64,000 nt of DNA, from the sequence record MN871440.1; one strand, 5' to 3'. Under the pieces are notes generated by a model. The model made no database searches. It saw only the letters and a program-made list of their open reading frames with translations, and was not told where the DNA came from. A program made the position numbers and the translations under genes. Within the stretch, counting starts at the first letter, position 1, and the number at the start of each line of letters is the position of its first letter. Positions 39,789 through 61,451 of the stretch are shown piece by piece.

Positions 39789-39797
39789 ATTTAAAAC

Positions 39798-39882: not shown

Positions 39883-39963
39883 TAAGAGGGATCCAGATGC
39901 CCCGTTTGTAGCATCTGGTGTGTAACTCGTTACATAAATGCTTTCTTTCGAGTGATCATTTAT

Positions 39964-40039: not shown

Positions 40040-40046
40040 AAATTTT

Positions 40047-40123
40047 GCATCGGTAACTCAGTATGGTAGAGTGGCGGATTGAAAATCCGCTGGTCACTGG
40101 TTCAAGTCCAGTCCGATGCACCA
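40047..40123 (+). tRNA. tRNA-Phe(GAA)
   Basis: Cloverleaf with CCA. Confidence 0.95.
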
Positions 40124-40148
40124 AGTTCAATCGCTTTGAAAGGTGAAA

Positions 40149-40256
40149 TCGCTAATGCTTTTAAGTGCAATGAGATAGCTTCTCGAAAGTCGGGATATAG
40201 ATTGCCCCGTCGGTATTGATTTCATGTGGAGTTCGATTCTCTACCTTAGCGTCCCA
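40149..40256 (+). ncRNA. tRNA-like RNA with an expanded anticodon domain and CCA
   Basis: CGCTAA/TTAGCG acceptor stem; T arm GTGGAG-TTCGATT-CTCTAC; ATGAGAT/ATTTCAT stem enclosing about 40 nt. Confidence 0.65.
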
Positions 40257-40271
40257 TTTTATAAGAATATT

Positions 40272-40345
40272 CCGTCATTAGCGCAGTCCGGTAGCGCATC
40301 TGGTTTGGGATCAGAGGGTCATAGGTTCAAATCCTATATGACGGA
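40272..40345 (+). tRNA. tRNA-Pro(TGG)
   Basis: Cloverleaf; ends A-CAA. Confidence 0.93.
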
Positions 40346-40458
40346 CAAAATTGATTCAGCGTTGCGTTGAATGATGTGGGGTTACACAAAGTAGGATTAA
40401 GTTACCGAAACGATAAGACGATGACCCACGTTAAACGTTCATATTCGTCCCAGTTTAT

Positions 40459-40531
40459 AGGGGTATAGCCAAGTTGGTAAGGCAACGGACTTTGATTCCG
40501 TCATGCACTGGTTCGAGCCCAGTTACCCCCG
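40459..40531 (+). tRNA. tRNA-Gln(TTG)
   Basis: Cloverleaf; CCA not encoded. Confidence 0.9.
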
Positions 40532-40672
40532 CATTTTTAGCTTGCTAAAGGCTAAATGAGCTGCTATGATTCCCGTAGCTCGTTAAATTATCAAACGGGA
40601 AGGTGATGCGCGTGTGTAGCCAGAACGTAATGTTCAAGAGTCATGACGACATAAAGCCGTGTCGAAGAATTT

Positions 40673-40767
40673 GGAAGCGTGGCAGAGTCCGGCTTATTGC
40701 ACCAGTCTTGAAAACTGACGGCGAGGTATCCCCTCGTCCATCCGTTCGAATCGGATCGCTTCCGCCA
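40673..40767 (+). tRNA. tRNA-Ser(TGA)
   Basis: Type II cloverleaf, G73-CCA. Confidence 0.95.
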
Positions 40768-40791
40768 AATCAAACAATAGAGAGTTATATC

Positions 40792-41013
40792 ATGAAAGCA
40801 ACAAAACAAGATCTTGAGCTGGCATCCCGTTTCGCTGATAAAGCTGATTCATACGGTTTCGCTACTACTCAAGGTGATGCTAAGTGTACCAATCAACAGA
40901 TTGAAAAGCTGTTAAAACTTGGACTTATCAAAGTTAGTCGCGGTGTTCATTGCATTGGACAAAAAGACTTTGGCGGTTTTGTTCGAAGAGGAACTCACTA
41001 TTGCAAAGCTTAA
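40792..41013 (+). CDS. hypothetical protein
   Basis: ORF, AGAG RBS. Confidence 0.55.
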   Translation: MKATKQDLELASRFADKADSYGFATTQGDAKCTNQQIEKLLKLGLIKVSRGVHCIGQKDFGGFVRRGTHYCKA

Positions 41014-41123
41014 AACAAGAGATCGAGGAAAACGTAAGAGCCTCGTTCGTGTTATCCGGTCAGCGTGTTACTGATTCTCAATGGGAACAGATTAAACGAG
41101 CTGCTGAATACATCAAAGAACAT

Positions 41124-41211
41124 GGAGAAATGACAGAGAGGCCGAACGTAGCGGATTGCTAATTCGTAGGCCCGCAAGGGTCCGTGGGTTCGAATCCCAC
41201 TTTCTCCTCCA
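41124..41211 (+). tRNA. tRNA-Ser(GCT)
   Basis: Type II cloverleaf with CCA; discriminator is T. Confidence 0.9.
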
Positions 41212-41217
41212 AATAAT

Positions 41218-41302
41218 GCGGATGTGGTGAAATTGGCAGTCACACTAGATTTAGGATCTAGCGCCTCCGGGCATGTCGGTTCGAGTCCGACCATCCGTAC
41301 CA
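41218..41302 (+). tRNA. tRNA-Leu(TAG)
   Basis: Type II cloverleaf with CCA. Confidence 0.95.
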
Positions 41303-41310
41303 GATAAATA

Positions 41311-41334
41311 AAGGGGAGCTTCGGCTCCCTTTTT
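41311..41334 (+). terminator. intrinsic terminator ending the tRNA run
   Basis: GGGGAGC-TTCG-GCTCCC-TTTTT. Confidence 0.85.
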
Positions 41335-41349
41335 CATTAGGAGAATACA

Positions 41350-41742
41350 ATGAGTAGTTCATTTAAAGATTTCAAAGGCGATACGAACTCAAGCGTTGGT
41401 GATCTAATCTGCAAGCTGTTGAAAAGCGTGGCCTACGTTCACCACAATCATCTGGTGACGACCGTCTATAGCAGACATATGGCACTAAACGAATATTACA
41501 CAAGCTTACCTGAGTTGGTAGATGCGTTTGCCGAGGCTTCTATTGCTCGCGGTTATGCTCAGACATTTTCTGTGTCACATGCGGAAGTTGAAGTTGAAAT
41601 GTTGATTGACAATTTCCTGCAAGAGTGTACTATGGTGCATGAGTATCTGGAAACCAAACGTCATTTCGATCTGGTAAATCTGTTGGAAGACATCATGAGT
41701 TTCATGAGTTCTATTCGATACAAACTGAATCTTAAAGGTTGA
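41350..41742 (+). CDS. ferritin/Dps-like four-helix protein (DUF5856-like)
   Basis: HHNHL...YSRHMALNEYY..LPELVDAFAE; YKLNL C-terminus. Confidence 0.6.
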   Translation: MSSSFKDFKGDTNSSVGDLICKLLKSVAYVHHNHLVTTVYSRHMALNEYYTSLPELVDAFAEASIARGYAQTFSVSHAEVEVEMLIDNFLQECTMVHEYLETKRHFDLVNLLEDIMSFMSSIRYKLNLKG

Positions 41743-41767
41743 CAACAAATAGGGACTATGTAATAAT
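41739..41767 (+). promoter_or_regulatory. early promoter for the split tRNA; -10 box flanked by an inverted repeat
   Basis: TTGACA...TAATAAT with ATAGGGAC/GTTCCTAT flanks. Confidence 0.75.
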
Positions 41768-41784
41768 GGTTCCTATAAACAAAC

Positions 41785-42550
41785 GGCCCCGTAGCTAGAG
41801 GGTTCAAGCAGGCGGCTCACATCGTCTCTTAGATGTATAAATAGATTCATAATCTAGGAGACATTAAATGAACTGCGTATATTGCGACAAAACATGTAAG
41901 AACACAAATTCACTGAGACAGCATGAAATCAGGTGCTCGAAAAATCCAAATAAAATACAGTTTCATTGTCCGAGTAGAAAAGGACAGAAAGGCGGAAATA
42001 AGTACACAAAAGCCGCGAAACTTGGATTGGATAAGCCGATTATCTCAGAAGAAACCAGAAAACGATTATCGGAATCCTCTAAGATGCAAAACCAATTTAG
42101 ATGGACACCCGAAGCTAGACAAAAGTTTTCTGATGTTATGAAAGCGGTTGTTAGAAACAATCCGGATTCTTACAGTAAAAATAACGTATCTGGTCGCGTT
42201 AAGATGTATACGTTTGAAGGACAAACTTTCAAAGGAAAGTGGGAATTATTGGTTGCAAAGTGCCTTAGTTCTGTTAAGATTGAATACACAAACGATGTTT
42301 CTCCATTTGAGTATGAGTGGGAAGGAAACAAACACTTATATTTTCCTGACTTTTATCTACCTTCTCTCGATCTTTATATCGAAGTAAAAGGTTACGAGAG
42401 GGAAAGAGACAGATGTAAGTGGAAATCGGTTGACAATCTCGTTGTCCTTAAAAGTTCACATATTAAAGAACTGGAAAGTGGTAAATCCATAATCGAGTTC
42501 TTGTGAAGAATAACCGCTCGTTGTGGGTTCGATTCCCACCGGGGCAACCA
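41785..42550 (+). tRNA. tRNA-Ile2(CAT) split in the anticodon by a 691-bp insertion (exons 41785-41819 and 42511-42550)
   Basis: Joined halves give GGCCCCG...GGCGG-CT-CAT-AA-CCGCT...CGGGGCA-A-CCA, an ileX-like cloverleaf. Confidence 0.85.
41868..42506 (+). mobile_element. putative homing endonuclease, PD-(D/E)xK type, with an N-terminal Zn finger and NUMOD3-like motifs
   Basis: CxxC...H...C; ISEETRKRLS; YFPDFYLP...YIEVKG; lies inside the tRNA gene. Confidence 0.8.
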
Positions 42551-42571
42551 AATTCATTTGAGGAAATAATT

Positions 42572-42778
42572 ATGTTTTATGTTGTAATTCGCTCATTCTT
42601 TGATATAGAATACGGTGGAGAATATAAAGAGTTCTATGCCGTTCGCACCAACAAAAAGATCGCTGAATCTGTTGTTGCTCGCGCTACAGTCGAGTATTCT
42701 GAAAAGGGATACAGCGAAAGCTACCGTTTCTCAATGGAAGAACATACCGAAGAAAGCTTTGGTGATTTGGATGTATAA
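42572..42778 (+). CDS. hypothetical protein
   Basis: GAGG RBS. Confidence 0.6.
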   Translation: MFYVVIRSFFDIEYGGEYKEFYAVRTNKKIAESVVARATVEYSEKGYSESYRFSMEEHTEESFGDLDV

Positions 42779-42780
42779 TT

Positions 42781-43092
42781 ATGCATTATATCGACGTTGA
42801 CAAGGACAAGAAAGTCCGATTATCTCAGTTTCAACGACTCTATCTATCTCGACTATTCCACAACGGAGATCGAGTATGTCGTTATATCAACGAAATGCAT
42901 CAACAAAACAAAGTTGTCTTTGTTGCACAATCTCCGTTTAACGCGGTAGAAGACAAAAAGATGTTGATTGCCTGTGCTAGTGAGTTCGCATTCAATCGAG
43001 AACTGGCTAGACAGAAAGACGATTTCAACTTTAAAATGCACAAGGCTTTGCACAAAGCAAACTGGGAATACGAACATGATTCTGATGATTGA
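42781..43092 (+). CDS. hypothetical protein
   Basis: ORF. Confidence 0.6.
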   Translation: MHYIDVDKDKKVRLSQFQRLYLSRLFHNGDRVCRYINEMHQQNKVVFVAQSPFNAVEDKKMLIACASEFAFNRELARQKDDFNFKMHKALHKANWEYEHDSDD

Positions 43093-43345
43093 AGGCTACA
43101 AAAAGAAAGTTGTTCATCAACGCTGGCAAATCGTGGCATTTCTCGCCAGAAAAGATATCGTGGACGAAGATTATCTGGAAGATTGTGCGGATGAAATTCG
43201 CGACATCATGAAAAGTGGTGCTGAATACTGCTATGGTGATTTGGATCCATATCGCCGTGAGATCAACGAAGCTCGTTGTTTGATTGTTAGTGATAACGAA
43301 GAGAAGTTAGCAGAAATGGTGGCAGACGCTGCCGAAGAGATCTAA
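43085..43345 (+). CDS. hypothetical protein
   Basis: ORF; start uncertain. Confidence 0.55.
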   Translation: MIEGYKKKVVHQRWQIVAFLARKDIVDEDYLEDCADEIRDIMKSGAEYCYGDLDPYRREINEARCLIVSDNEEKLAEMVADAAEEI

Positions 43346-43353
43346 TAAATAAT

Positions 43354-43438
43354 AGGTGTTAGTTGTAAGTCTCAATTGGAAGAGCTACTGGGCAGAAACC
43401 CAGTGGGGTGCGGGTTCGAGTCCCGCCTTCTGACGCCT
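43354..43438 (+). ncRNA. tRNA-like RNA with a 6-nt anticodon loop and no CCA
   Basis: D arm; ACTGGG-CAGAAA-CCCAGT; canonical T arm GCGGG-TTCGAGT-CCCGC; offset 9-bp terminal stem. Confidence 0.65.
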
Positions 43439-43520
43439 CTATAAGGAATATATGATTAGACATAAGTTTTCACACAAGGGACAGTTTTTTCATTGTTTTA
43501 ACTAACAATGGAGATCCAAA

Positions 43521-43901
43521 ATGTCAAGAACTACCCGAGTTAAGAACAAGAATGAAGTCAAGTATCTGATCGGACACAACTTCTGGAAAGCGAACTGTAA
43601 CGCATATTACCGAATTGGTAAGTACGATTTCTGGCGTTATCACATTCAGCAAGAACGTATCAATATGAACGTTTATGAAGAATATGATCGTGAGAAAAAT
43701 CAGATCGTCCGTGGATACGACTGCGAAGTTTGCAAAACCGGCAATTACTCAAACAAGAGCTGCCGAGAGTATGTCAATCTGAGTCGCGCTAAAGTGAGAG
43801 ATCAACTTAAAGCTATCACTTTGGAAAATTCCGATTGTGCTGACATCATTGATGACAGAAAACAAAGAACATGTACCTTCCGCTGGACCGTACAATGGTA
43901 A
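43521..43901 (+). CDS. hypothetical basic protein
   Basis: GGAG RBS; followed by a terminator at 43906-43927. Confidence 0.65.
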   Translation: MSRTTRVKNKNEVKYLIGHNFWKANCNAYYRIGKYDFWRYHIQQERINMNVYEEYDREKNQIVRGYDCEVCKTGNYSNKSCREYVNLSRAKVRDQLKAITLENSDCADIIDDRKQRTCTFRWTVQW

Positions 43902-44007
43902 ACAGAACCCGCTTCGGCGGGTTTTTTATTGGAAAAATTCCTTGCATTGTCCCGCTGTTCTGATAAGATAGCTCTATCGAAACAACGAATCACTTGAGGA
44001 ATACATT

Positions 44008-45452
44008 ATGGCTACAATTCACGATTTTCTGTTTCCGTTTGAACTCAATGAAGGTTACCATGTTGCAATTATTGATGATCTTCGTGATACACTTTTGAAA
44101 TGCACATACAGCCGCAAGATCTCACAGTATATCTTAGATCGTTTCGGCTATAAATCTGGCGTGTATATCAACAAAGGTAAATCTCCAGAACTGTATATCA
44201 TTACCGAACGTGGTTACACTACCGTTGATAAAGCGTCCGATATCGATGTGTTTTTTGATAAAACTTGTGTTGACACACTAGACGATCTTGTGTATGCTGA
44301 AATTGATGATAGCGTTACCGAGATCGAAACGTCCGATTGTGTATACGAGCGCAGTCGTCAACTTGAACAGGAGTGGAAACCAATGTTCGGTGAGTGCATG
44401 ATCTTTGGTTACGAAGATTCAACACTGGTAGTCAAGAAAGACCACTATTTCGTTCTGAATGGTTTCTTTAACGTAGATATCAACAAACGAGGTTAATTAT
44501 GCGCAACATGACGTTTAACTCGGCAAAAGAGTTCTGGGATTTTACTCTTGAGGAACTAGCTCAGTTTGACACAATCACGGTATCATTCGCGAATGAATGT
44601 GAACTGTATAAGCGGGATCGTGGTCTAGAACTTTACTACCACATTCACCGCAAACAAAAAGTGATTGCATTCAGCCACGATTATGGCTATGATAGTATTA
44701 TTCGAACTGAAAACGAGGAATCGAAATGAAAGTCTTTGTAAAGAATATGGAAGAACTGTTGACCATGAATCTGATCGGGATTCGCATCGTTGATTGTCTT
44801 GGTAAGATCTACAATCGCAACGATGATGCCGAACAACTGTTTGAAAACGTCTTTGGCGTTCGTCCATTCGTTTTCGTGAAAGACATGTATCACGACTGTG
44901 GTAGCATCATGTCCGAGTATGGCACAATGTATACAATCGTTGGCCAACGCTTTATCAAGTTCTACGGCGCTGATAATCTGTTTATGGACGTACAGGGCGA
45001 ATGATGAAAAAAGTTCTTGCGTTTGTCGCTCTGATGTTGTTTAATAGCTCTGTGTTCGCATCATATGAAGGTGTTATTACTTGCTGGTTCCAAACCGGTG
45101 TGTATGTGAAAACACCGGATGGCACGTTGATCAACAATCTTCAATCCGATAGTATGGATCGAATTGATATTGGATGAGTATTCAGATACAACAATAAATT
45201 GTATTATGTTACCAACGCTGTGTGTTCTGTAATGAGGAATCAATAATGAAGCATGTAATTTCGCTGTATAAAGAGTATTTCAATACCGAGTCTATGTTCT
45301 ATCGTCTGCCAGCAGTCGATAAAGTCGGTGAAGTTGTAAAAGACATAATTGTGGATGATTTGTCCTTTACGCAAAACTATATCTCATTCAAATACAAAAA
45401 TGAAACCTATCTGGTTTCTGGCTGCAAACTTATTGCTAAGGAAATGAAATGA
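44008..45452 (+). CDS. run of small early hypothetical genes (44008-44496, 44499-44729, 44726-45004, 45001-45177, 45246-45452)
   Basis: Translationally coupled ORFs after the early promoter at 43942-43969. Confidence 0.6.
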
Positions 45453-45874
45453 AAAAGATTATTCAAAACGTGATGTTCGTGTGTGCCATGCTGGCTGTTG
45501 GTGCCGTTAAAGCTGATACTCTGTATGAAGTAGAAACCTCAGGTCTGATCTTCAAAGATACTCTGAGTGTAGAAGTATTCAGCGACCCGGACTATCCGAA
45601 CATTACTTGTTACGTCAACCTGCCGTCTCGCTCTATGAGCATCGAAGACCAGACTGATGTTGACATGCAGTGTGTGACCGCACCGTTCGAATCTGGCGTT
45701 GAACTGACTTCTCGCAAAAACATCTTCTCACAGAAGAAAAGCTGGTTCTTCAAAAACATGGTAATCGACCGTGTTTATGACAAAGAGCATATGAACATGG
45801 TTTACGTAAGTTACACCAAGAAAATGGATGGCGACAACGCTAGTTCCGCTATCACCGTGGTGCCTGTTCTGTAA
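45449..45874 (+). CDS. CreA-family periplasmic protein
   Basis: Signal peptide; VEVFSDPDYPNITCYV; FFKNMVIDRVYD; SAITVVPV. Confidence 0.8.
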   Translation: MKKIIQNVMFVCAMLAVGAVKADTLYEVETSGLIFKDTLSVEVFSDPDYPNITCYVNLPSRSMSIEDQTDVDMQCVTAPFESGVELTSRKNIFSQKKSWFFKNMVIDRVYDKEHMNMVYVSYTKKMDGDNASSAITVVPVL

Positions 45875-45883
45875 GGGAATTCT

Positions 45884-46210
45884 ATGATCCGTGTTCTGTT
45901 TCTTGTGTTCGTCGCGCTGTTATCTGGGTGCGGCGAACCAGAAAAGCCAATCGTGGTTCGAGAAGTGACGGCACAAGCAGCGCGATATAAGCCACAAGAG
46001 TGGAGAGGCAAGTTCTATCAAGAAGCTCGCGTTGAGTTTGATTACAACGGCATTCAAGTGTATACTATAGAAACCGGTAGCTGTACGATTGTGCCTGAGT
46101 TCAAACAAGAAACCGTTGTGTTGCTGAAAGCCGTTTATTCGAATGGAATCAAATACTACATCAAGGACGACAAATACCAAGCTAACTTTTTAGCGAAATA
46201 TTGTTACTGA
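45884..46210 (+). CDS. putative lipoprotein
   Basis: Lipobox LSGC. Confidence 0.65.
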   Translation: MIRVLFLVFVALLSGCGEPEKPIVVREVTAQAARYKPQEWRGKFYQEARVEFDYNGIQVYTIETGSCTIVPEFKQETVVLLKAVYSNGIKYYIKDDKYQANFLAKYCY

Positions 46211-46260
46211 TGTTTACTTGCCACGGAAGGCGAGCTATAGTAACAGAAAACGAGGAACTA

Positions 46261-46839
46261 ATGGCAAAGCTGTTTTTTACACATGCCGCGATGAATGTTG
46301 GTAAGAGTACACAACTGTTACAAGTTGCATACAACTACAACGAGCGCGGTCAAAACGTACTGTTGTTTAAACCTGCTTTTGATACCAGAACTGAGGGAAC
46401 AATCGGTTCTCGAATCGGGATCAATCGCGAATGTCGTTGTGTGCATCACAACGAAAATATGTTTACTTTGATTGAGAAAGAGAGTAAACTACAGAAAATT
46501 GATTGTGTACTTATTGACGAAGCACAGTTTCTAACTGAAACTCAGATCTGGCAACTGTCTGATGTAGTCGATAAGCTCGATGTCCCTGTTATGTGTTACG
46601 GACTAAGAACTGACTTTCTTGGTAATTTGTTTGAGGGTTCAAGAACTCTTTTAGCAATCGCTGATGAAATCAGACAGTTATCCGGGATCTGTGACTGTGG
46701 AAGAAAGTCATGTATGGTAGCTCGCATTGACGACGATGGTCGAGTTATTAAACGTGGTGAACAAATTTGCATTGGGGCTGAACAACGATATATTTCGTTC
46801 TGCCGCAAGTGTTGGAAAGAAAAACTGTCTCACGAATGA
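46261..46839 (+). CDS. tk: thymidine kinase
   Basis: AAMNVGKST; LIDEAQFL; CYGLRTDF; C-terminal Zn-binding Cys pairs. Confidence 0.97.
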   Translation: MAKLFFTHAAMNVGKSTQLLQVAYNYNERGQNVLLFKPAFDTRTEGTIGSRIGINRECRCVHHNENMFTLIEKESKLQKIDCVLIDEAQFLTETQIWQLSDVVDKLDVPVMCYGLRTDFLGNLFEGSRTLLAIADEIRQLSGICDCGRKSCMVARIDDDGRVIKRGEQICIGAEQRYISFCRKCWKEKLSHE

Positions 46840-46874
46840 GACTATTTTAAACAAACCTGAAAGAGGTAATTTCT

Positions 46875-48317
46875 TTGTCTAAGTTTATGAATGCAATGAC
46901 TCAAGCGCAAGCACTGGCACGTACCGCTAACGGTGCAGTTACTAACTATACCACTGGTGATAAGTGTCTGAATCTGTTTTCTCAAATCGGTTCCGCTCGC
47001 GGTAAAGATCTGAGTTCCATGTTTGTGGAAGCTTACACCGAATCTCCGGATTGGGCAGTTCGTATTCTGCAATGGGCTCGCGATATTCGCGGTGGTGCTG
47101 GTGAGCGTGAACAGTTCATTCGTCTGCTGAAACTGCTGGCACATCGTCATCAAGTTGACGCTACCGTCGTTCTGATGAACACACCGGAAATCGGTCGTTA
47201 TAAGGACGTTGTTTCAATGATTGGTACTCCAATCGAAGATGCTGCGGTCGCTATCATGGTGGACGCGATTCTGATCAAACAGAACGGTCTTGCTGCTAAG
47301 TGGGCTCCTCGCAAAGGCAAAGAAGCTGGTATTCTGGCCAAAGCTATGCGTATGACTGCTAAAGAGTATCGTCAGACAATCGTCCGTATGTCGAACACCG
47401 TTGAACAAAAAATGTGTGCTCGTCAGTGGGATGGAATTGATTTCGGTAAACTGCCGTCTGTTGCATCTGCCCGATATCAGAAAGCATTCCTGAAAAATGC
47501 GAATGAGCGTTATGTTGCTTATCTTGAGTCTCTGAAAAAGGGCGAAGCTAAGATCAACGCTGGTGCTGTGTACCCGTATGACATGATCAAATCATTGCGT
47601 ACCGGTTCTTCTGTTGCTGCTGATGCACAATGGAAAGCACAACGCGACTGGATGGCTGGCTCTACTGAAAACGTAATCGCAATGGTTGACGTTTCTGGCT
47701 CTATGAGCACCCCGACTGCCGTCGCTGGTCTGTCTGCTATGGATATCGCGATCTCTTTGGGTCTGTATATCGGTGAACGCTCTGGTGGTGTGTTCAAGAA
47801 CGAAGTGATTACCTTCGATGATAATCCTCAGTTCTACAACATCAAAGCGAAAGGCGATGATCTGCAAAGCATGGTGAATCATCTGGGACGCGCTCCGTGG
47901 GGTGGTTCTACCAACTTCGCTGGTGCATTCAAGATCATTCTTGATCGTGCCGTGAAACATCGAGTTCCGCAGTCTGATATGCCGTCTATGATGGTTGTAT
48001 TGTCTGACATGGAATTCAACGTTGCAGACGGCGGTTATAGCGGATACTATCGTATGCGTGACCGCGAACGTACCAACTTTGAGGTGATTCGTCAGACTTA
48101 CCGCGATGCTGGTTACGAAATGCCGAAACTTGTGTTCTGGAATCTTTGCCCGCGCCCGACTAACAATCCGGTGACCAAAGACGATCAAGGCACTGCGTTG
48201 GTATCTGGTTTTAGTCCTGCAATCATGGAGACAATCCTGAGTGCAAAAGAGTTTAACCCGATGCAAATCATGCTTGACAAGATCATGAGCGACCGATACG
48301 TCGGTATTGATTTCTAA
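46875..48317 (+). CDS. DUF2828-family Ro60/TROVE-like protein with a C-terminal vWA domain
   Basis: RTANGA, WARDIRGGAGERE, LAAKWAPR, KINAGAVYPYD; MIDAS DVSGSM...GSTNF...LSDMEF. Confidence 0.85.
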   Translation: MSKFMNAMTQAQALARTANGAVTNYTTGDKCLNLFSQIGSARGKDLSSMFVEAYTESPDWAVRILQWARDIRGGAGEREQFIRLLKLLAHRHQVDATVVLMNTPEIGRYKDVVSMIGTPIEDAAVAIMVDAILIKQNGLAAKWAPRKGKEAGILAKAMRMTAKEYRQTIVRMSNTVEQKMCARQWDGIDFGKLPSVASARYQKAFLKNANERYVAYLESLKKGEAKINAGAVYPYDMIKSLRTGSSVAADAQWKAQRDWMAGSTENVIAMVDVSGSMSTPTAVAGLSAMDIAISLGLYIGERSGGVFKNEVITFDDNPQFYNIKAKGDDLQSMVNHLGRAPWGGSTNFAGAFKIILDRAVKHRVPQSDMPSMMVVLSDMEFNVADGGYSGYYRMRDRERTNFEVIRQTYRDAGYEMPKLVFWNLCPRPTNNPVTKDDQGTALVSGFSPAIMETILSAKEFNPMQIMLDKIMSDRYVGIDF

Positions 48318-48321
48318 AATT

Positions 48322-48345
48322 AAGCCACCTTCGGGTGGCTTTTTT
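48322..48345 (+). terminator. intrinsic terminator (identical copies at 13273 on the minus strand, 51276 and 61347)
   Basis: AAGCCACCTTCGGGTGGCTTTTTT. Confidence 0.9.
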
Positions 48346-48393
48346 ATTGACATTATTTTCGTGATCTGAGAGAATACATAAAAGGAGAACAAT

Positions 48394-49490
48394 ATGTTCA
48401 TAAACAAAAATGATTGCGAAAAATTAAAACGGTGGGCAGATAGCGCACGATTCAAATGGAATCAAGATATTGCTACCGTTGAAACTTATCTCAAAGTGAG
48501 AACTACCACAATTGATATCCGATTCTCTTATTTGGATGTCCACGTGGCATTTGATCATATGTGGTGGGAAGATGGCGCCGTGTTCTGCGTTGAAACTGAC
48601 ATCGGAACGAAAGACATCGATACCATTATCAACGATCTGAATTCTAAGTTCGGGGATCGATTGAAAGCAAAGCTTGACGAACGCAAGAAAAAGAGCAAGA
48701 TAGACTAAATCAAATTGCTCAAAGAGAGCAACAAGAACGCGAAACCTATCTTAAACTGAAAGAGAAATTCGGAGAATAACATGTTCAAAAGTGAAGATTG
48801 CAAACGTATCGTGACGAAAGTCGAGGAACTGCGGATTGATTGGAACGCAAAAGTTTCTCAGTTCCATGATAAAGATAACATTCGTAAGTTGACAGGCAAA
48901 TATTTGAATGTTAACATGGATCTCGAAGATATGACGATTAGCGTCACGTATGAGACTGGCTGGGACGACGACTTCCACGTTTGTAGCATTGACGTAAATG
49001 TTGATGATCGGGAAATTGATGATGTTCTGGAAGATATCGAATCCGAGATTGCTCGTTCATTCCAGCATATCAAACAACGAGACGAAGAATATCGAGTCAA
49101 GAAAGAAGCGTGGGAAGCTAATCAGAAGCAACAACGCTTAGAACAATACAAGCGACTGCAAGCCGAATTCGGTCAAATTTCAACTCCAATGTAAGGATTA
49201 AAATGCGAAACGTAAACGAGTTGGTCTATAACATCAAGACTTTCAAACAAGCTATTGTCGAACACGCGAATGAAATCAAAGTGAACGGTGATTCCAACTG
49301 GGAATCAAATGATGCTATCATTGATGATGCTGGCAACGTGGAGTTCTGGTTTCACTCGCACAAAGGCGAAGGTGATCACTATCGTACCAGTTTGAATCTG
49401 AAACTGTTTACCGATGATCGTGTTATCGATCATCATTTGGCAAACTGTAAAACAGAGCTGAAAGAGAAAATCGAACATGATGGCGTCTGA
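48394..49490 (+). CDS. tandem, probably paralogous early genes (48394-48708/48779, 48781-49194, 49203-49490)
   Basis: The first two share an MFxxxDC start and a C-terminal (Y)xxL(K/Q)x(K/E)FG; promoter at 48347. Confidence 0.6.
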
Positions 49491-49680
49491 AAATCTGACT
49501 CGAATTCTCAGAACCATTGATTGCATCGGCTATGATGAAGTGAGTACAGATCCACAAGATCGACATGATTTCATTAGTCAGCATGATCATGTTGAGTTGT
49601 TGAAACGTGGATACAATTTCCACATAAGACAGATCAAACAGAACGGTTATCATGTTTTCTTGGTGATGTCAAATGTTTGA
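49477..49680 (+). CDS. hypothetical protein
   Basis: ORF. Confidence 0.55.
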   Translation: MMASENLTRILRTIDCIGYDEVSTDPQDRHDFISQHDHVELLKRGYNFHIRQIKQNGYHVFLVMSNV

Positions 49681-49993
49681 AATGCTCTATCTGCTGATAA
49701 TCGGTCATTTTGTGGCCGATTACGTCTTGCAAACTGATAGCATTGCAAGAGGAAAGAATCCTATCAACTCACCGCTCTATGGAGTGCATTGGCTTTACTG
49801 GCTAACTGCGCATAGTGCTACTCATGCGCTCGTTGTTTACATTGCAACCAAGAGCGTCTGGCTGAGTTTGACAGAGCTTGTAAGTCACTGGATCATCGAT
49901 TATGCTAAGTGTAATGGCAAAATCGGATTACACCAAGATCAGGCGCTACATATTTTTTGTAAAATTTTGATTGCTGCCTGTTTTATCGCTTGA
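49673..49993 (+). CDS. DUF3307-family membrane protein
   Basis: GHFVADYVLQ; AHSATH; HWIIDYAK; DQALH. Confidence 0.8.
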   Translation: MFEMLYLLIIGHFVADYVLQTDSIARGKNPINSPLYGVHWLYWLTAHSATHALVVYIATKSVWLSLTELVSHWIIDYAKCNGKIGLHQDQALHIFCKILIAACFIA

Positions 49994-50044
49994 CAACTAA
50001 ATCGATGTCTCTATAATGGGGACATCAACTAAGAGGAAGTTAAT

Positions 50045-50521
50045 ATGAGTATGAAAGCTTTGGCAAAACTGTTGTTCCCGAATACTTATACCGCAATCGT
50101 AGAAGAAGGCAAGTGGGCTGGGATCGAACAGAAGCGCAAAGAGTACGAAGAACAGAAAGAGAAAGATCGTTTGATCATGCTTTCATACAAACGTCCTCTT
50201 GGTATTCCCATGATCTCGTTTGATGGTTCTGGTAATGTTCGCGTCGTTGTTAACACGGATTACATGTATGACGGTGCCGTGACTAAATGTGTAGATCTGA
50301 TTTCTGGTGAAGAGTTCATTGACTTCACTACTCAGATCCGATACAGTGAGGAATTCGCGGAGCTAGTCGCACGTAATCAGATCGAAGATGTTTACGCTTT
50401 GATTCATCGCGGTAACGCCAAGATCATGAAAATGAATCCGAATCGTGAGCCGTGTGTTCGTTTGAAATTCAAGCTGGCAGTGAAAAATTTCAACGAAAAG
50501 GGTTTACCTTCTAAGAAATAA
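50045..50521 (+). CDS. hypothetical early protein
   Basis: Promoter TTGACA-16-TATAAT at 49990; GAGG RBS. Confidence 0.7.
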   Translation: MSMKALAKLLFPNTYTAIVEEGKWAGIEQKRKEYEEQKEKDRLIMLSYKRPLGIPMISFDGSGNVRVVVNTDYMYDGAVTKCVDLISGEEFIDFTTQIRYSEEFAELVARNQIEDVYALIHRGNAKIMKMNPNREPCVRLKFKLAVKNFNEKGLPSKK

Positions 50522-50531
50522 GTGTTAAGAT
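50503..50531 (+). promoter_or_regulatory. sigma70-like promoter for the tRNA-like RNA triplet
   Basis: TTTACC-17-TAAGAT with an extended TG. Confidence 0.65.
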
Positions 50532-50534
50532 AGT

Positions 50535-50665
50535 TTTGTTGTCGCGATTAGTTCAGTGGGAGAACACCTTTGATCGCAAAGAAGTATCGAGTACGGTTCG
50601 AATCCGTTATAGTGTGGGCACATCGAGAAACGTCGTTGGTTCGAATCCAACATCGCGACAACAAA
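50535..50665 (+). ncRNA. tRNA-like RNA with two T arms
   Basis: 14-bp terminal stem; D arm; GGTTCGAATCC occurs twice. Confidence 0.7.
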
Positions 50666-54164: not shown

Positions 54165-56646
54165 TTCATAAGCGCCTTGATGATCCAAAAATGAATCTCA
54201 TTAACTATATGTCGAGTGGAATAACAGGCTATACGTTTTTGGGATTCATAGAAATTCAGAAAGACGATTATTGGGGCATGAAAGTTGGCGAACGGACCTT
54301 CGCCGCTTGTCATTTGCTCAACGAACGTTCAAAATGGCCTGTTTCTGAGGAAGAAGAAAAAGAGCAAAAATTCATTGACAGCGGGCACAATACCGTTCTG
54401 TATTTCAAGGGAACCGATAACACCAGTTATCTGAAACGATTCAAATCTAAAGATATGGCAATCAAATGGTTTTATAAAACCAAAGTTTTTATTACCGATA
54501 ACTCCTCTTGCTGGGTGAATAGCTAATGAGAATAGAACGAATTCGAGATCACGACGAATATTGCGACATCGGAGAAGTAACACACGATTATGTGGAAGTA
54601 AGCAAAGAAGAGTTTGACAAACTGCGAGATCAAGCAGAAGATCGCGATGTCACTGGATTGTGTTCTCCTCCGATTGAGTTTCTTTATTCAAAAGAGCTTC
54701 ATTCGGAAGGTTGTGAGATTCTTGGTAAAGCTTACCTCTATGAATCTGAGAAACGTCCGGGGGCGCCAGAAGAAAATCGGTATTTGAAGTTGACAGAAAT
54801 GCCGAAACCATATAAGCTGGTAACACTGATGAAAGATGATTTGACTCTGGAGCAACGTCGAGCTTATCGTGAACGAGTCAAATCTGGTTACTACAAAACA
54901 AAAGGATAAGAAATGTTTTATCGTATTTCGAACATCAAAGACGTTCCTACCGAACTGGTAGAGATCAACAAAATGGAAAAGCCGTACAAAGACGAAACTA
55001 ACGGTATTATGTTTAAACCGTTCGCTCGTTTTGGTATCGGTTCTGGTAGTGATGCTTATTCCACTATCTATCGAACTGTTTCCGAAGACGGTAAAATGGA
55101 AATGCAGTTCCGTTTGTACGGCGCTTATGACGTCGAAGTGATTCGGTTTGATCTTACCAATGGTGTTTACAAAATCAGCCGTCATAACGTCAAATCGCTT
55201 GGGATGAGCCGCAAGCCAAATAGCAGTGGTTTGTTCTGCGTAAAAGACGCATATCGAATTGGTGTTGGTCCGACTCTTGCTATTGGTGATGGAGTTACCA
55301 GTCGAAATGGAAACTGCAAAGTTCTTCTGATCACAGAGGACGCTGTTGTTCTTAGCGATGACAAGAACAAAACCATTCTGATTCGTAAGAACGATCTCGG
55401 CGCATTGGAAGCACACGGTATCGGTTATATCGATGAACTGTTGTAATCACGATTAAGGGCCTTCGGGCCCTTTTTGGAGATAAGATGAAAGCATATGAAA
55501 CGAGACACTACATTGAACACCCAGTATTACATAATCGATTGTTGTATCTGCTTAACGTTCTGAACAACTACTATCCCAAATCCAAAAAGATAGCAGAATC
55601 ACAGGAGTTCGCGAATTTCAAGAGCGACACTTATTGGTTGTTTGACAAGCTTTGTCCAGAGTTGAGCTGTGCCAACAGCGAAGATTTTGTAGAAAGTTTC
55701 AATCGCGAACGTCACGCGAAAGGATATTTTCAGATTTATGTGAGAATAATTCCTAAAGTCGCTTGACATCAAATTCAGTTCTGTTAAGATAGCTACATCG
55801 AAACAAACTGAGGAACAAATCATGATGACTACCGCTGAACTGAAAGCAAAACGCGCCAAACGTGGATTCGCAACCGAGAAAGATGTTTTGATCGAATCTC
55901 ATGCATTCGCACAACGCGCACTGTCACAAGCTGTTATCATGGAACACGCCGAGAACATCGATCTGTTCCGCAGTAAAATCAAAGTTTACGAAACTCGTAT
56001 TAACGAAATCACAATCTAAGGAAATATTATGGCTTATTATCTGAAACACCAAGTAACTCTTCCAAAAGTCGAATACAACTATATCCGACTGATTGATATG
56101 AAACCAGGAGAATCGATTACGATTAAAGATCGCTCTTATGTCCTACTGAACATCGAGCGAACTGGCACCAATGTTGAGCCCGTATATAATCTGGAAGCAA
56201 GTGATGAACGTGTTTCTATGCGTATTGTCAACGGTAACGCTCTGATCACCCGAGTCAACAAAGTTAACTTCGGCATCACCAACGAAAGTATCGAAGTCGG
56301 GAAAATGGGCTGGGTGAAACGTGGTGGATTCTATTCCCACAAAGTAAGAAAAGTAATGAATCCTGGTCTGATTACCGGTCGTGCTATCATCGAAGGTGAT
56401 ATGATCGAACTGCACCGGAATAGCGGTACTCGGATCGAAGTTCTGAAAATGGGCGGTGAGCCTATGATCGACCCGATGACACAAGAATACATCCTGCTGA
56501 AAATTATCAGCAAAGACAACAGCAAAGATCAAGTTGTGTTACACTCTGTCAAATCCGAAATGGATGATTGCAACCTGCAACGTGTTGCTGGTGATGTTGT
56601 CTATGTCAACAACTACATGGAATCAATTATTCCACATCGTCGTTGA
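54161..56646 (+). CDS. run of hypothetical genes (54161-54526, 54526-54909, 54913-55446, 55485-55766, 55822-56019, 56029-56646)
   Basis: ORFs with RBSs; terminator at 55455; promoter at 55763. Confidence 0.6.
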
Positions 56647-56714
56647 TTTACATAGAAAGTTGAAGTACAATCTGTGCCTATCGAGTAAGGCCCTTTTTCA
56701 TTTATGAGGATATC

Positions 56715-57617
56715 ATGATCGACATTATCAAAAACACCACACAAGCTGCAATCATTGGCGATTGCGTAGGCGCATTCAACGAATTCAATTTCGGCACTAA
56801 AGGAAAGAAAAGACTGCGTAACGTAGATCTCGAACTCCTGAAAACAAAACGCGATGTTTTTAACAATCAATACGGTAACTTCACAGACGATACCACTTGT
56901 GCGCTGATCACCATGCGCAACTTCAAATATGGTGAGTTTGATGTTCCAGCTATTAAGCGCGATATGAAGCGTTGGATCGAGCGTGGTGCGTTTTCTTCCA
57001 CTGGCGAGTGCTTTGATGTTGGTACAGGTACTGCCTATGCCATACTCAAGGACCAACCGGTAACAGACCCATCTAAAGGTGCCGGTAACGGCGCGCTCAT
57101 GCGTATGTATCCAGTCGCGATTGCAACTTACGGTAGAAGTCCAGAAGATATCGAGCGAATCGTTAAATACATGACGGAGTTTACCCATCCGGTTCCGTTG
57201 TGTCTGCATTACTCTATGCTATATGTTCGTATCATGCATCGGATATTCGACGGAGTAAACAAAAGGACGCTATCCAAAGAGTTTGGAGCGTATTTCGATG
57301 AAGACTCATGCTTGACTACTGGCTACGTTAAGGACTCGCTCACAATCGCTTGGAGAGTGTTCCTAGAGTTCGAACACAAAGAGTATGGGATTTTTCTCAT
57401 AGCAAACATGGGATTAGATAGCGACACAATCGCAAGTATCTATGGATCAATGATTGGCGCATATACAACTGTCCAGAACAAAAGTCAAGAGTTTACTCCT
57501 TGGCTAGTAGAGAATATCAAACGACAAGATCTAGTTGATAGTATTGTTAAAGAGTTCACTCACCGAGTTGTTTGTACAATGATTGATCATTTACCAAGTT
57601 ATTTGCACAAAAGTTAA
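56715..57617 (+). CDS. ADP-ribosylglycohydrolase (ARH/DraG family)
   Basis: GDCVG, TDDT, FDVG, GNGALMR, DSDT motifs; TTGATT-17-TACAAT at 56643. Confidence 0.92.
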   Translation: MIDIIKNTTQAAIIGDCVGAFNEFNFGTKGKKRLRNVDLELLKTKRDVFNNQYGNFTDDTTCALITMRNFKYGEFDVPAIKRDMKRWIERGAFSSTGECFDVGTGTAYAILKDQPVTDPSKGAGNGALMRMYPVAIATYGRSPEDIERIVKYMTEFTHPVPLCLHYSMLYVRIMHRIFDGVNKRTLSKEFGAYFDEDSCLTTGYVKDSLTIAWRVFLEFEHKEYGIFLIANMGLDSDTIASIYGSMIGAYTTVQNKSQEFTPWLVENIKRQDLVDSIVKEFTHRVVCTMIDHLPSYLHKS

Positions 57618-57624
57618 TCAGTTG

Positions 57625-57698
57625 TAGGAAGTCGCGCCAGCGACTGCGTAGCTAACTCGTTGATATCATTAAAGAAGAGAAGATAGATCTTCATTAAA
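57625..57698 (+). repeat. 74-bp intergenic element, copy 2
   Basis: Same two blocks and 17-nt spacing as 28275-28348; followed by an A12 run. Confidence 0.9.
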
Positions 57699-57781
57699 AA
57701 AAAAAAACTCGTTAGTTTAGCGGCTTACGCCGCAGTGCGAACGCACTAAATATAATAAATCAGTTCATTAAGAGGGACAAA

Positions 57782-60700
57782 ATGTTAACAACTAAACAAT
57801 TATTCGAACGTCAAGAAGAACAAGGTTATGATCGCTTCTTGACTGAAAATACCTTGTATGATAAAGACACTAAATTGGCATTCATCAATGATGAAACTGC
57901 TATCATCAATGCCTTTACATTCAACTTCTTGGGTATTCTCGGGAGCTTTAACGCTGCTCGTCAACTGAACGATCAAACCACTCTGAAATTCATTCAGCGT
58001 TATTTCAAAACCGACGGTCAACTTCGTCTTGGTAATATCGAGGACAAGAACCACAACATTTCGCTGATCATCAAACTGATGAATGACAAGCAAATGTTTA
58101 TCAGTACAGCTAAAGTAAACGAAATGACTCGTTTTCTGGTACTGTGTAAGTCCGGTGTTATTAACACTATCGATGATGATATTGTTCGCGCTTGGGTTGC
58201 TAATATCAAGAATACCGCTTTGTTGAAAGCAGATACAAAACTGCGTGACGTTCTACTGAAATTCAAGAACGGCGCAATCAGTATGATTGATGCTTCTAAA
58301 GAAATGCGTCGTCAACGCACCAAACACGAAGAAATCAGCATGGAATATTGGGACGTTAGCAAGCGTATTCGTTTCAAGAACATGGATACCATGACCACTG
58401 GCACTGCTGCTGGTAACGCTCAGGACGCTGATGCTGCGATTTCTCAAGTTGACACTAGCGTTGATACTGTCGATAGCGTAGAAGATGCCACAGACGCACC
58501 TGAACCGGTTCCCGTTGTTGCGCCTGAACCAGTCAAACCCGCGTATCTGACCTATAATCACGATGCTGGATTTGCTGATGCTGTTATTTCAATCGTAGAA
58601 CAACACATCAATCAGAAAGGTCAAGGTATTTCTGGTATGAATGATTTTGATCCGAATGAATACATCATGGGAGATGACTTTAGCCCAACTGCTTTTGAAT
58701 TTGATCTTGATGATCCCGCACAGAAAGAGATCTATGATCGATATACAACTCAGTTTGCCGAAGTGACAAACAAACTCGCGTCGTACTGCCGTCAGTTTAA
58801 GTTGCATTCGTCTTCAATTGATAATATTCAGTCTGATGTCGGTACCTATCATCTGAACGATGAAACGTTCTTCATTAAGAATCGCGCTGAATTTGAAAAT
58901 CTTTACAAGAAATACGGATTGTATGGCATCGCAGATCCATTTAACGGTACAATCGAAATGTTTACCGTGATCTATGGGATTGCCGGTAGCAAAGTTGATA
59001 ATAAATCTTGGCTGTTTGGCTTTAGTGCTGATGATATTCTTCGTGAACTGTTCAACGACAAACTCGGCAGCAAAGTTGAAGCTCATAGTTATGGCATGAC
59101 ACAAGACATGATTATCACTCTTGCCATTCGTCTTGAGAACGCACCAGATGAACGTAGAATCGCTATCGTTGATCAATTTGCTGTTAGTTTCATCACAGTT
59201 TCAACTGTGCTTATGGGACATCAAGGCACGGACATGAAACAGAACCCACTGTTTGGTTCTGAGTTTGATATTTTCACCAATACCAAGGCACAAGCCACAT
59301 TGGTTAAAGTCTGTAACGAAGAGATTGCCAAGATTTACCCAACAATCCCGGGTCTGCCGACATGGGGCAAGGGTACCGAGCCGACTAACAAGTTCCGCAA
59401 TATGGTTGTTTATCTGACTCGCGATTATATTACTGGTGCTAACTTTGATTTCATTTCCGAATATTGGCTCAAGAAAATGTATCTTGATGATACCGAATTC
59501 GTTTACGAATACAAGATGACCGCAGGCGCAAAACCAAATGAAATGACGCATATTCCATTGCGTTTCATGCCGTCTATTGCAGTTGCTCAATTGGCCAAGG
59601 CAGTTGTTCGTTATACAAAACTGAACAGCGCGAATTATCCGCCGCTTGAGGCGCTGAAACTGTCAATGACTAAGTTCCCAGAAGTGACCAAAGAAATTCA
59701 AGAAATGATTTTGCAGAAGATTGATAATCCTGCCGAAGTGCATTACGCTATGCAACTGATGCCGACCTATCTTGACTCTGCTACAACAGAAACTCAGGTA
59801 GAAGAGCGTGTTAATTTCTTGCTTAATAACATCAAAACAAAAGATGGCGTTAGACGCTTTGTGTCTCGTATTGGTCAATGTGAACCACACGTTCGTGTTC
59901 CGATGTTGCTTGCAGCATATGAGCACTTTGGCGATGACATGGACGCACAGTATGTTGGTGACTTTACATATGACTTCATCAACAAGATTGATTTCGATGA
60001 AAAATCATCAGCTAAGTTTATGGCTCTTGAGGTCGAATTCGGATTTAAGTTCATGAACAAAGAAAATCTGACCGGTATTAGACGTCGTGATGATAAAGCG
60101 AAAGCACAACAAACTCTGGTTGATATCATTTATAATGGTATGAAAGAAGATGAAGCGGTTGCTAACGCATTCTTTGAAGAACTGGAAACTTATTACAAGA
60201 CCAAAGTTCGCAATACTTTGACTGGTGTTAAGTTCATCTATAACCAAGTATCTGGTGGTCCGATCAACATGTTTGATACCCCTGATATGCGTCGCGTTAA
60301 GAAGATGTTCGAGTTTAACGAGATTGACCCAGACGAACTGGTAAAAGCTGCTAAGATTCGCGCTAAGAAAGGCGAAAACTTTAGTGATTATATTCGTCGT
60401 GTTGAATCTGCTGCTGATTCAAGCACAGTTGTTCCGCCTTGTGCTGTTAGCGATGACAATATCAGCGACGAACAGAAATATTTGATTGGTAAGCATCTGG
60501 TTGATACCTACTATGCAGGCAAACACGGTAACACTTACCCATTGATTCACAAGTCTTTCACTGTTAACTTGTCTTATCCAGAATATAACGAGTTCTTGAA
60601 AGCTCAAGAATCTATTGGCAAACTGGAACAAATTGTGCCAGCTTTCCACGGTACTGGTGGTATCGCTGCTAACATGGTTCTTCGCTATGGTTTCAAGATC

Positions 60701-61342
60701 ATCCCGAGTAAGGATAAATCGGTTGTTGGTCGTATGCTTGGCGATGGTCTTTACTTTAGTAACAAAATCGATAAGATTTTGCAATACGTGAGTAACGATG
60801 GTTATGGTCGTCATGCTGGGACTCGTGGTTATGTGTTCGAAATGGAAACCATTCTTGGTGAGCGCAGACAAGATTATCGTTCTGCTGGTTGTCCGAATCC
60901 AACCGATCATCATGCAGTTCGTTCACCAGAATGGGCCGTGTTTGATCCGAAGAAGCAAGTCAAGATCTTGAAATGCTATGAAGTTGAGCTGAACACTTTC
61001 AGCAAATACAAAGAGCATCAAATCAAAATGAAGGGAAGCATGAACGAAAGCAAAACAATGAAGTTCGGTGAAATGCTGACCGAAGCCAAGATGGCCAAGA
61101 CTAGCGATTATGCGATTTATACTTTCTATGACGGTATGATCCCGATGCGCAAGAACGGAATTCTTGAGTATGTTGACCCGAAAGAGTTCGTTCCGGCTAA
61201 CGGCGTAGAACTTGAGTATGGCGAAGACTCATATGTTTCTGTGTATATTCCATCGAAGTCAACAGAATACAATAGATATTCTATGTGTAAGAAACTTAAA
61301 GGAAAAGACTTGGAGAAATTCTTGTCCAGAGCCTGTAAGTAA
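57782..61342 (+). CDS. 1186-aa late protein with a C-terminal PARP-like (H-Y-E) ADP-ribosyltransferase domain
   Basis: FHGTG, GDGLYFS...KILQY, PEWAVFD; CTAAATA at 57746; terminator at 61347. Confidence 0.8.
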   Translation: MLTTKQLFERQEEQGYDRFLTENTLYDKDTKLAFINDETAIINAFTFNFLGILGSFNAARQLNDQTTLKFIQRYFKTDGQLRLGNIEDKNHNISLIIKLMNDKQMFISTAKVNEMTRFLVLCKSGVINTIDDDIVRAWVANIKNTALLKADTKLRDVLLKFKNGAISMIDASKEMRRQRTKHEEISMEYWDVSKRIRFKNMDTMTTGTAAGNAQDADAAISQVDTSVDTVDSVEDATDAPEPVPVVAPEPVKPAYLTYNHDAGFADAVISIVEQHINQKGQGISGMNDFDPNEYIMGDDFSPTAFEFDLDDPAQKEIYDRYTTQFAEVTNKLASYCRQFKLHSSSIDNIQSDVGTYHLNDETFFIKNRAEFENLYKKYGLYGIADPFNGTIEMFTVIYGIAGSKVDNKSWLFGFSADDILRELFNDKLGSKVEAHSYGMTQDMIITLAIRLENAPDERRIAIVDQFAVSFITVSTVLMGHQGTDMKQNPLFGSEFDIFTNTKAQATLVKVCNEEIAKIYPTIPGLPTWGKGTEPTNKFRNMVVYLTRDYITGANFDFISEYWLKKMYLDDTEFVYEYKMTAGAKPNEMTHIPLRFMPSIAVAQLAKAVVRYTKLNSANYPPLEALKLSMTKFPEVTKEIQEMILQKIDNPAEVHYAMQLMPTYLDSATTETQVEERVNFLLNNIKTKDGVRRFVSRIGQCEPHVRVPMLLAAYEHFGDDMDAQYVGDFTYDFINKIDFDEKSSAKFMALEVEFGFKFMNKENLTGIRRRDDKAKAQQTLVDIIYNGMKEDEAVANAFFEELETYYKTKVRNTLTGVKFIYNQVSGGPINMFDTPDMRRVKKMFEFNEIDPDELVKAAKIRAKKGENFSDYIRRVESAADSSTVVPPCAVSDDNISDEQKYLIGKHLVDTYYAGKHGNTYPLIHKSFTVNLSYPEYNEFLKAQESIGKLEQIVPAFHGTGGIAANMVLRYGFKIIPSKDKSVVGRMLGDGLYFSNKIDKILQYVSNDGYGRHAGTRGYVFEMETILGERRQDYRSAGCPNPTDHHAVRSPEWAVFDPKKQVKILKCYEVELNTFSKYKEHQIKMKGSMNESKTMKFGEMLTEAKMAKTSDYAIYTFYDGMIPMRKNGILEYVDPKEFVPANGVELEYGEDSYVSVYIPSKSTEYNRYSMCKKLKGKDLEKFLSRACK

Positions 61343-61451
61343 ACTAAAGCCACCTTCGGGTGGCTTTTTTGTGTAAAAGTCCTTGCGTCGATCTGCCGTT
61401 GTGTTACTATACACACATCGAAACGAAATACACAACTGAGGAAAACATCAT

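Follow-up and report, generated by a model that had tools for sequence, protein, structure and literature searches.

Phage T4 Alt is a large late protein with a C-terminal ADP-ribosyltransferase (ART) domain of the R-S-E clade and an L-x-E motif near its N terminus, made by a phage that encodes an S77-type prohead protease. To our knowledge, head-packaged ARTs are known from T4 Alt and inferred for MuF fusions, and all of these belong to ART clades other than the PARP-like, H-Y-E clade considered here. Packaging in the head is frequent among phage ARTs, which provides a general precedent, and the PART family is listed among the common phage ARTs (PMC9503650). ORF131c of Aeromonas phage Aeh1 (NP_944019) has been listed as PARP-like with an H-Y-E arrangement in 2005 (PMC1266365), 2006 (PMC1524935) and 2014 (PMC4245714); the three papers give the domain match only and contain no experiments, late promoter, cleavage motifs or proposal of packaging. 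Perina et al. supposed that the PARP-like gene of Aeh1 originated from a host. Here we analyze the orthologous gene in a 64,000-nucleotide stretch of sequence record MN871440.1 (herein the window), which derives from Aeromonas phage AsFcp_2/PX29 (Straboviridae); the gene occupies positions 57782..61342 of the plus strand. We propose, with confidence that is evenly balanced, that it encodes a late-expressed modular effector that would be packed in the head of the phage and, as with T4 Alt, delivered into the host, as suggested by its late promoter, its conserved protease-type motifs and the gene neighborhoods of its relatives.

The coding sequence is intact, as described in an initial annotation made from the letters of the window: 1186 codons with a single terminal stop and none within, encoding 1186 residues (135.3 kDa). 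As a query, its 3561 nt are 100% identical to sequences of Aeromonas phages AsFcp_2 and AsFcp_1, 99.8% identical to PX29, and 75% identical to phiAS5 and phiWae14. PX29 belongs to the genus Angelvirus of the Straboviridae and has A. salmonicida as its host; its orthologue, gp130, is annotated as a "hypothetical protein". Aeh1 ORF131c is likewise an orthologue, with 44-45% identity over the full length and the same architecture, upstream ADP-ribosylglycohydrolase (ARH) gene and CTAAATA promoter motif. A match to phrog_18612, a PHROG of unknown function, spans the full-length protein.

The C-terminal region almost certainly adopts a PARP-clade fold, judging from structural models and profiles. 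The AlphaFold2 model of residues 861-1186 has a mean predicted local distance difference test score (pLDDT) of 90, and the PARP-like ART domain was delimited to residues ~905-1085 (60494..61036, plus strand) from AlphaFold2, Foldseek, profile and Pfam results together with invariant alignment columns. A Foldseek search of the PDB returned 141 matches at E<=1e-3, of which the top 50 are all catalytic domains of PARP1, PARP2 or PARP3 (E ~2e-8, probability 1.0, template modeling (TM) score normalized to the target ~0.5), with identities of 14-19% for the PARP matches. The initial annotation had proposed this comparison with DarT and Tpt1 as further candidates; neither is found among those top 50 structural matches, and both were set aside. 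Searching PDB sequences with a family profile of the core domain gave only PARP1/2/3 and tankyrases (best E 6.8e-7), and in the profile alignment the His-Gly, Gly-x-Tyr-Phe and second-Tyr motifs match those of chicken PARP1 (1a26), with the likeness reaching the strand before the His motif. An additional invariant pair, H915-G916 (residues 913-917, 60518-60532), lies 5' of the canonical triad and aligns with the region of the first strand in the ART domain of PARP1. A plain sequence search of the PDB with the single protein found nothing, PARPs being reached only by profiles and structure, and the single-sequence match to Pfam PARP PF00644 (E 4.9e-4, 20.1 bits) falls under the gathering score of 26.7. 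Ten relatives carry a precomputed PF00644 match. An exhaustive HMMER scan with residues 861-1186 recovered 369 clusters (50% identity) at E<=1e-3, 189 of them at E<=1e-30; nearly all are proteins of 1000-1500 residues with the domain at the C terminus.

The motifs quoted in the initial annotation lie at residues 955-959 (FHGTG), 987-993 (GDGLYFS), 998-1002 (KILQY) and 1049-1055 (PEWAVFD), and its assignment of the domain to the H-Y-E rather than the Alt-like type is borne out by Pfam, Foldseek and profile searches alike. They contain the predicted catalytic residues H956 (60647-60649), Y991 (60752-60754), Y1002 (60785-60787) and E1050 (60929-60931), all on the plus strand; none varies in an alignment with 17 relatives or in one with 69. 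The domain is closest to PARP1, PARP2 and PARP3 (PF00644), its best structural and profile matches, and has all of their His-Gly, Gly-x-Tyr-Phe, second-Tyr and Glu motifs; unlike these enzymes, the phage protein has no helical regulatory, WGR, zinc-finger or BRCT domain. From the conserved residues we predict that the domain is probably catalytically competent. A structural or scaffolding head protein in which the PARP-like domain is no longer an enzyme would accord with the large alpha-solenoid body described below, and a coat-protein likeness was remarked in 2005. That explanation is very hard to credit: 69 relatives at 26-86% identity all keep H, Y, Y and E as well as the NAD+-site glycines, and no coat-protein likeness appeared in any search made, the earlier remark not being reproduced by Pfam, PHROG or structure searches.

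Expression of the gene late in infection is likely, to judge from its promoter. A gp55-type late-promoter core, CTAAATA, lies at 57746..57752 on the plus strand, 36 nt 5' of the ATG, with a Shine-Dalgarno-like sequence, AAGAGGGA, between them at 57770-57777; the sequence TATAAATA occurs once in the window. Twelve copies of CTAAATA are present in the window against 9 +/- 3 expected, which is no enrichment; what is informative is where the copies stand and on which strand. All 12 copies are on the locally transcribed strand, and 6 of them are 25-39 nt 5' of a start codon, namely those of genes 4, 48, 26, 9 and wac, which are canonical late genes, and that of the PARP-like gene. Elsewhere in PX29, the head cluster has CTAAATA 25-76 nt 5' of genes 15, 19, 20, 22, 23 and 24. 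The late consensus that Nolan et al. derived for Aeh1 is exactly CTAAATA (PMC1524935), and on this sequence evidence the motif is the late-promoter core of the phage group. No copy but that at 57746 occurs in the final 24 kb of the window, so that the gene has the appearance of a late-promoter island surrounded by an early region. A promoter scan found no sigma-70-like site on the plus strand of the 164-nt spacer that precedes the gene (57618..57781). Downstream, an intrinsic terminator (61346..61373, plus strand) follows 4 nt 3' of the stop codon; a GC-rich 9-bp stem with a 4-nt loop (hairpin 61346-61367) is succeeded by a T-run.

The protease of T4 prohead maturation, gp21, cleaves at a pattern of an aliphatic residue, a free residue and Glu. 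Nine [LI]-x-E motifs occur in the PARP-like protein, and the two that the initial annotation had likened to gp21 sites, FLTE-N (residues 19-23) and MLTE-A (residues 1098-1102), prove to be the only two conserved across the family, each with a variable middle residue. At the first site, examined in 54 relatives, position 20 is L, I or V in all 54, position 21 is variable, E22 is kept in 53 and N23 in 50; an [LIVM]-x-E motif is present within the first 40 residues of 125 of the 127 relatives with the same type of N-terminal domain. At the second, among 69 relatives, position 1099 is L, I, M or V in 67, position 1100 is variable, and E1101 is kept in 64. The structural setting of both agrees with the gp21 pattern. 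The first site closes a low-confidence N-terminal helix (pLDDT 57-62) in a putative propeptide of residues 1-22 (57782..57847), which ends with L20-T21-E22 before N23, and the domain that follows is modeled at pLDDT 86-98. The second, L1099-T1100-E1101 (61076-61084), lies in a flexible linker of residues 1089-1106 (61046..61099), a predicted disordered segment and the sole part of the C-terminal model with pLDDT <50. Beyond this linker is a small, beta-rich C-terminal domain (residues 1107-1186, 61100..61339; six strands and one helix, pLDDT 91-97), in which F1115, P1121 and G1150 are near-invariant in the alignments of 17 and 69 relatives. If both sites were cut, the products would be a 122.8-kDa body (residues 23-1101) and a 9.8-kDa C-terminal piece starting at A1102; we predict cleavage at both sites tentatively, rating it slightly less probable than its opposite.

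A gp21-type protease is encoded by the phage, the PX29 gp21 orthologue having a Peptidase_S77 match with E 6e-72. Orthologues of T4 substrates in this phage carry [LI]-x-E near their N termini, gp23 at residues 66-68 and 72-74 and gp24 at residues 6-8. PX29 also encodes an Alt orthologue of its own (653 residues; phrog_802, E 1.5e-123), with L-S-E at residues 8-10 and CTAAATA ~30 nt 5' of its ATG; because packaging and processing are established for T4 Alt, the same two signals on this gene serve as an internal positive control. The PARP-like protein is an addition to the Alt of the phage and not a replacement for it. The two differ in several respects: there is no sequence similarity between T4 Alt, an R-S-E enzyme, and the H-Y-E protein described here, which is nearly twice as long as Alt and has an extra conserved motif after the catalytic domain. 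Neither PHROG nor Pfam searches gave an Alt match, and BLASTP against the Alt-like protein of Ralstonia phage RSP15 found nothing significant, so that the protein is at most an analogue of Alt and not a member of its family.

The initial annotation had remarked on a long uncharacterized N-terminal region, and this description holds: the N-terminal ~860 residues have no match in Pfam, PHROGs or NCBIfam, in which only the ART domain was matched. In the AlphaFold2 models, the region begins with a compact, all-alpha, family-specific domain (residues 23-200, 57848..58381; pLDDT 86-98), followed by an acidic, Pro-rich disordered linker (residues 205-242, 58394..58507; pLDDT <50) that differs in length and sequence among the aligned relatives, and a weakly conserved, solenoid-like middle region consisting of helices only (residues 250-860, 58529..60361; pLDDT 50-93), all on the plus strand. 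Foldseek comparison of the N-terminal model with the PDB gave generic HEAT/ARM alpha-solenoids only (TM <0.32), and comparison with BFVD gave family members only, plus insignificant matches to tape-measure and "internal virion protein" entries. Outside the family, tblastn against phages found no copy of the N-terminal domain, only family members, and a protein search restricted to this region returned close relatives only and was uninformative.

A link to Alt at the level of modules comes from Ralstonia phage RSP15. Its family member, ORF127, adjoins ORF128 (region L006:534-7855), a protein of 1047 residues with an Alt-like R-S-E domain (Pfam ADPrib_exo_Tox; phrog_802), and the two have in common an N-terminal stretch of 200 residues, 66% identical, that starts with L-N-E; one module therefore carries either ART clade. 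The same module also heads a 755-residue Kuttervirus protein (Salmonella phage maane, L007:4887-7154), the C terminus of which matches a PHROG annotated as "internal head protein". From these sequences, the ~200-residue RSP15-type N-terminal module looks like a swappable delivery module. Among 139 full-length representatives of the family, 127 have the N-terminal type of the window protein, 2 have the RSP15 type and 10 have others.

Wherever the genomic context is readable, the carriers of the family are T4-like phages. In uncultured members of this group the gene lies inside a co-oriented head/tail late cluster: it follows gp23 at locus L014, is placed two small open reading frames (ORFs) upstream of a portal-protease-scaffold-capsid series at L062, stands between sheath and tail tube at L043, and has a similar context inside the late cluster at L034 and L065. 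These neighborhoods, the large multidomain build and the C-terminal ART effector in a myovirus recall the polyvalent and MuF-fused head effectors of Iyer et al., which have portal or capsid neighbors as the family does in some lineages; unlike them, the PARP-like protein has a single effector domain and no detected MuF, portal or head domain.

Genes for NAD+ salvage (NAMPT, NMNAT-like and NAD synthase) recur within a few kb of the family gene in several lineages. In PX29, Aeh1, Ahp1 and Moby, as in contigs P0010 and P0012, NAMPT and NMNAT-like genes are found near it. Such genes lie 3-8 kb downstream in phages of Aeromonas and Stenotrophomonas (L001:15319-19264, in PX29 just past the window end; L005:11136-13709; L009:10379 onward), and metagenomic contigs have NMNAT-like or NAD synthase genes nearby. 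Such neighbors fit an NAD+-consuming enzyme and do not discriminate between models. They would sustain NAD+ consumption by an unpackaged enzyme, made late in the cytoplasm and modifying host or phage components in the same infection, for example by silencing abortive infection or by marking phage proteins or nucleic acid, with the L-x-E motifs being structural. The late promoter and the intact catalytic residues would suit that enzyme too, yet we think it unlikely, since it leaves unexplained the N-terminal module that the RSP15 protein has in common with an Alt-like protein, the insertion, in other lineages, among genes for sheath, tube and portal, and the conservation of a Glu motif with a free middle residue in a disordered linker.

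Under the packaged-effector proposal, the gene would be transcribed from its gp55-type late promoter alongside the head genes, and the N-terminal part of the protein would bring it into the prohead, where the gp21-type (S77) protease would trim it after E22 and possibly after E1101. The protein would then be ejected with the DNA into the next host cell and carry out NAD+-dependent ADP-ribosylation of a host macromolecule at the very start of infection, besides the separate Alt-like enzyme. A further step would be restricted to the Aeromonas phages: their early-type DraG/Tri1-like glycohydrolase, encoded next to the transferase, would limit or reverse ADP-ribosylation and would either reset the mark or shield the producing cell late in infection. 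Taken as a whole, the evidence added here makes it plausible that the family is a PARP-clade analogue of Alt; it consists of the late promoter, the two conserved protease-type motifs with their structural setting, the N-terminal module found also on an Alt-like protein, and the locations in head clusters.

Several points weigh against this proposal. In the window, the gene sits among small early-type ORFs on the early strand, away from the head genes. Nolan et al. list 15 late promoters in Aeh1, none of them before ORF131c, and note that novel ORFs appear early (PMC1524935). The initial annotation had described the gene as a separate unit, which stands as regards its own CTAAATA promoter and terminator; on the 5' side, a terminator scan and RNA folding revealed no canonical terminator in the stretch from the end of the ARH gene to the promoter, and early transcripts may read through into the gene. 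No MuF, portal or other known head or head-targeting domain was detected in the protein by Pfam, PHROG, NCBIfam or Foldseek searches, and the conservation of the L-x-E motifs may reflect a structural role instead of cleavage. A search of a literature library for pf16, Stenotrophomonas, Aeromonas and other carrier phages found no virion proteome for any of them; it likewise found no transcriptome for any carrier and no biochemical data for any family member. Finally, an ART-ARH pair in "certain Aeromonas phages", which is probably the pair described here, has been read as a toxin-antitoxin system by Iyer et al. in 2022 (PMC9503650). The initial annotation, which had interpreted the protein as an Alt analogue from the other ART clade, is supported in part, and it had missed the upstream ARH gene, the 2005-2006 literature on the PARP likeness and the published toxin-antitoxin reading.

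The ARH gene lies directly upstream (56715..57617, plus strand) and encodes a DraG/Tri1-like protein of 300 residues (PF03747, E 2e-33; phrog_6572, E 7.5e-114), annotated as an ARH in PX29, phiAS5 and Aeh1. Among solved or curated proteins it is closest to bacterial ARH, Tri1 and DraG, not to ARH3. DraT and Tre1, the transferases of the DraT/DraG and Tre1/Tri1 pairs, are R-S-E enzymes. The likeness to these pairs is that an ART gene adjoins a gene for a DraG/Tri1-like hydrolase; the differences are that the phage pairing is confined to one phage lineage and that its two genes have promoters of different types. In the toxin-antitoxin reading, or that of a related regulatory pair, the two proteins would act inside the infected cell, the ARH reversing a mark that serves, for example, to exclude superinfecting phages, and nothing would be packaged. 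Besides the published statement (PMC9503650), this is favored by the adjacent and co-oriented arrangement of the genes in the window, PX29, phiAS5, Aeh1 and Ah1, which is kept despite ART proteins that are only 45% identical, and by the closeness of the ARH to DraG and to Tri1, the immunity protein of an ART toxin.

The pairing is nevertheless far from general. Only 4 of 53 IMG/VR loci have an ARH gene within 10 kb, as judged by tblastn of limited sensitivity applied to these neighborhoods, and at the adjacent loci none was found beside the family gene in Ahp1, Moby, pf16, RSP15 or the four metagenomic contigs P0010, P0012, P0016 and P0017. A stretch of 164 nt, in which the late promoter lies, separates the two genes; the ARH gene has no CTAAATA on its 5' side and is preceded by a weak sigma-70-like site (56643-56671). 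The absence of a late promoter from the ARH gene and its presence before the ART gene lead us to rank the toxin-antitoxin reading below that of a packaged effector. Moreover, it assigns no role to the ~900 extra residues or to the two conserved L-x-E motifs, and neither protein has a significant match among PADLOC defense systems (none for the ART; E 1e-3, not significant, for the ARH). Hydrolases of the DraG/Tri1 type are usually tied to arginine-specific R-S-E transferases, such as the Alt orthologue of the phage, and not to the H-Y-E, or PARP, clade. Overall, we regard a toxin-antitoxin pair as improbable here; it is likely that the ARH serves, in its own lineage, to reset or contain ADP-ribosylation.

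Within the packaged-effector proposal, a more detailed version can be conceived, which we consider distinctly doubtful. The protein would be a latent precursor in the T4-type capsid: the C-terminal beta domain would silence the transferase while still in the producing cell, the prohead protease would cut the L-x-E motif in the linker and so arm the enzyme inside the head and nowhere else, and after ejection it would place ADP-ribose marks, possibly as chains or on nucleic acid, as PARP1-3 can, to be erased later by the early glycohydrolase in Aeromonas phages. This would amount to zymogen-type control of a virion-delivered effector and to the use of PARP chemistry in a bacterial cell. In either form, the interest of this large, widespread and uncharacterized family is that it combines a PARP-type domain with several independent sequence signs of late expression, processing and head association. 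If the packaged-effector proposal is correct, T4-like phages would deliver two chemically different ART effectors at infection, PARP-type chemistry would have a bacterial setting, with a target that could be protein, DNA or RNA, and the toxin-antitoxin interpretation published for the ART-ARH pair of Aeromonas phages would need revision.

The 164-nt spacer between the two genes (57618..57781, plus strand) contains, besides the late promoter, three small hairpins (57630-57645, 57720-57733 and 57734-47) and an A12 run (57696-57707). Its RNA fold has an energy of -46.3 kcal/mol (z -2.9 vs shuffles), and the hairpins and CTAAATA are kept in phiAS5 and Aeh1 although the flanking sequence has diverged; in both phages, the A12 run is replaced by a different segment of ~25 nt. 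The 3'-most hairpin extends into the first bases of the late promoter. Some T4 late genes have their ribosome-binding site sequestered when transcribed by read-through; this was considered for the present region and set aside, only a weak 6-bp long-range helix being found, which is unconvincing.

The wider window runs from genes 14 and 13 through baseplate genes on the minus strand to genes 4, 2, 54, 26, 3, 1 and 57B, then to 22 tRNA genes and, on the plus strand, a long series of small ORFs of early type. A Seg-like endonuclease is annotated between genes 13 and 14 in PX29, and outside the window its terminase large-subunit gene (L010:2185-5174) is annotated as split by an intein/GIY-YIG homing endonuclease. 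At 25715-25728, in the short gap between the divergent genes 48 and 4, two opposite-strand CTAAATA cores abut as a palindrome and form back-to-back late promoters. The 22 tRNA genes lie within 33399-50616, and late-promoter cores at 36296, 36655 and 39681 stand just 5' of tRNA blocks, one of them 10 nt 5' of the tRNA-Tyr gene at 39697; these positions suggest that part of the tRNA cluster is transcribed late.

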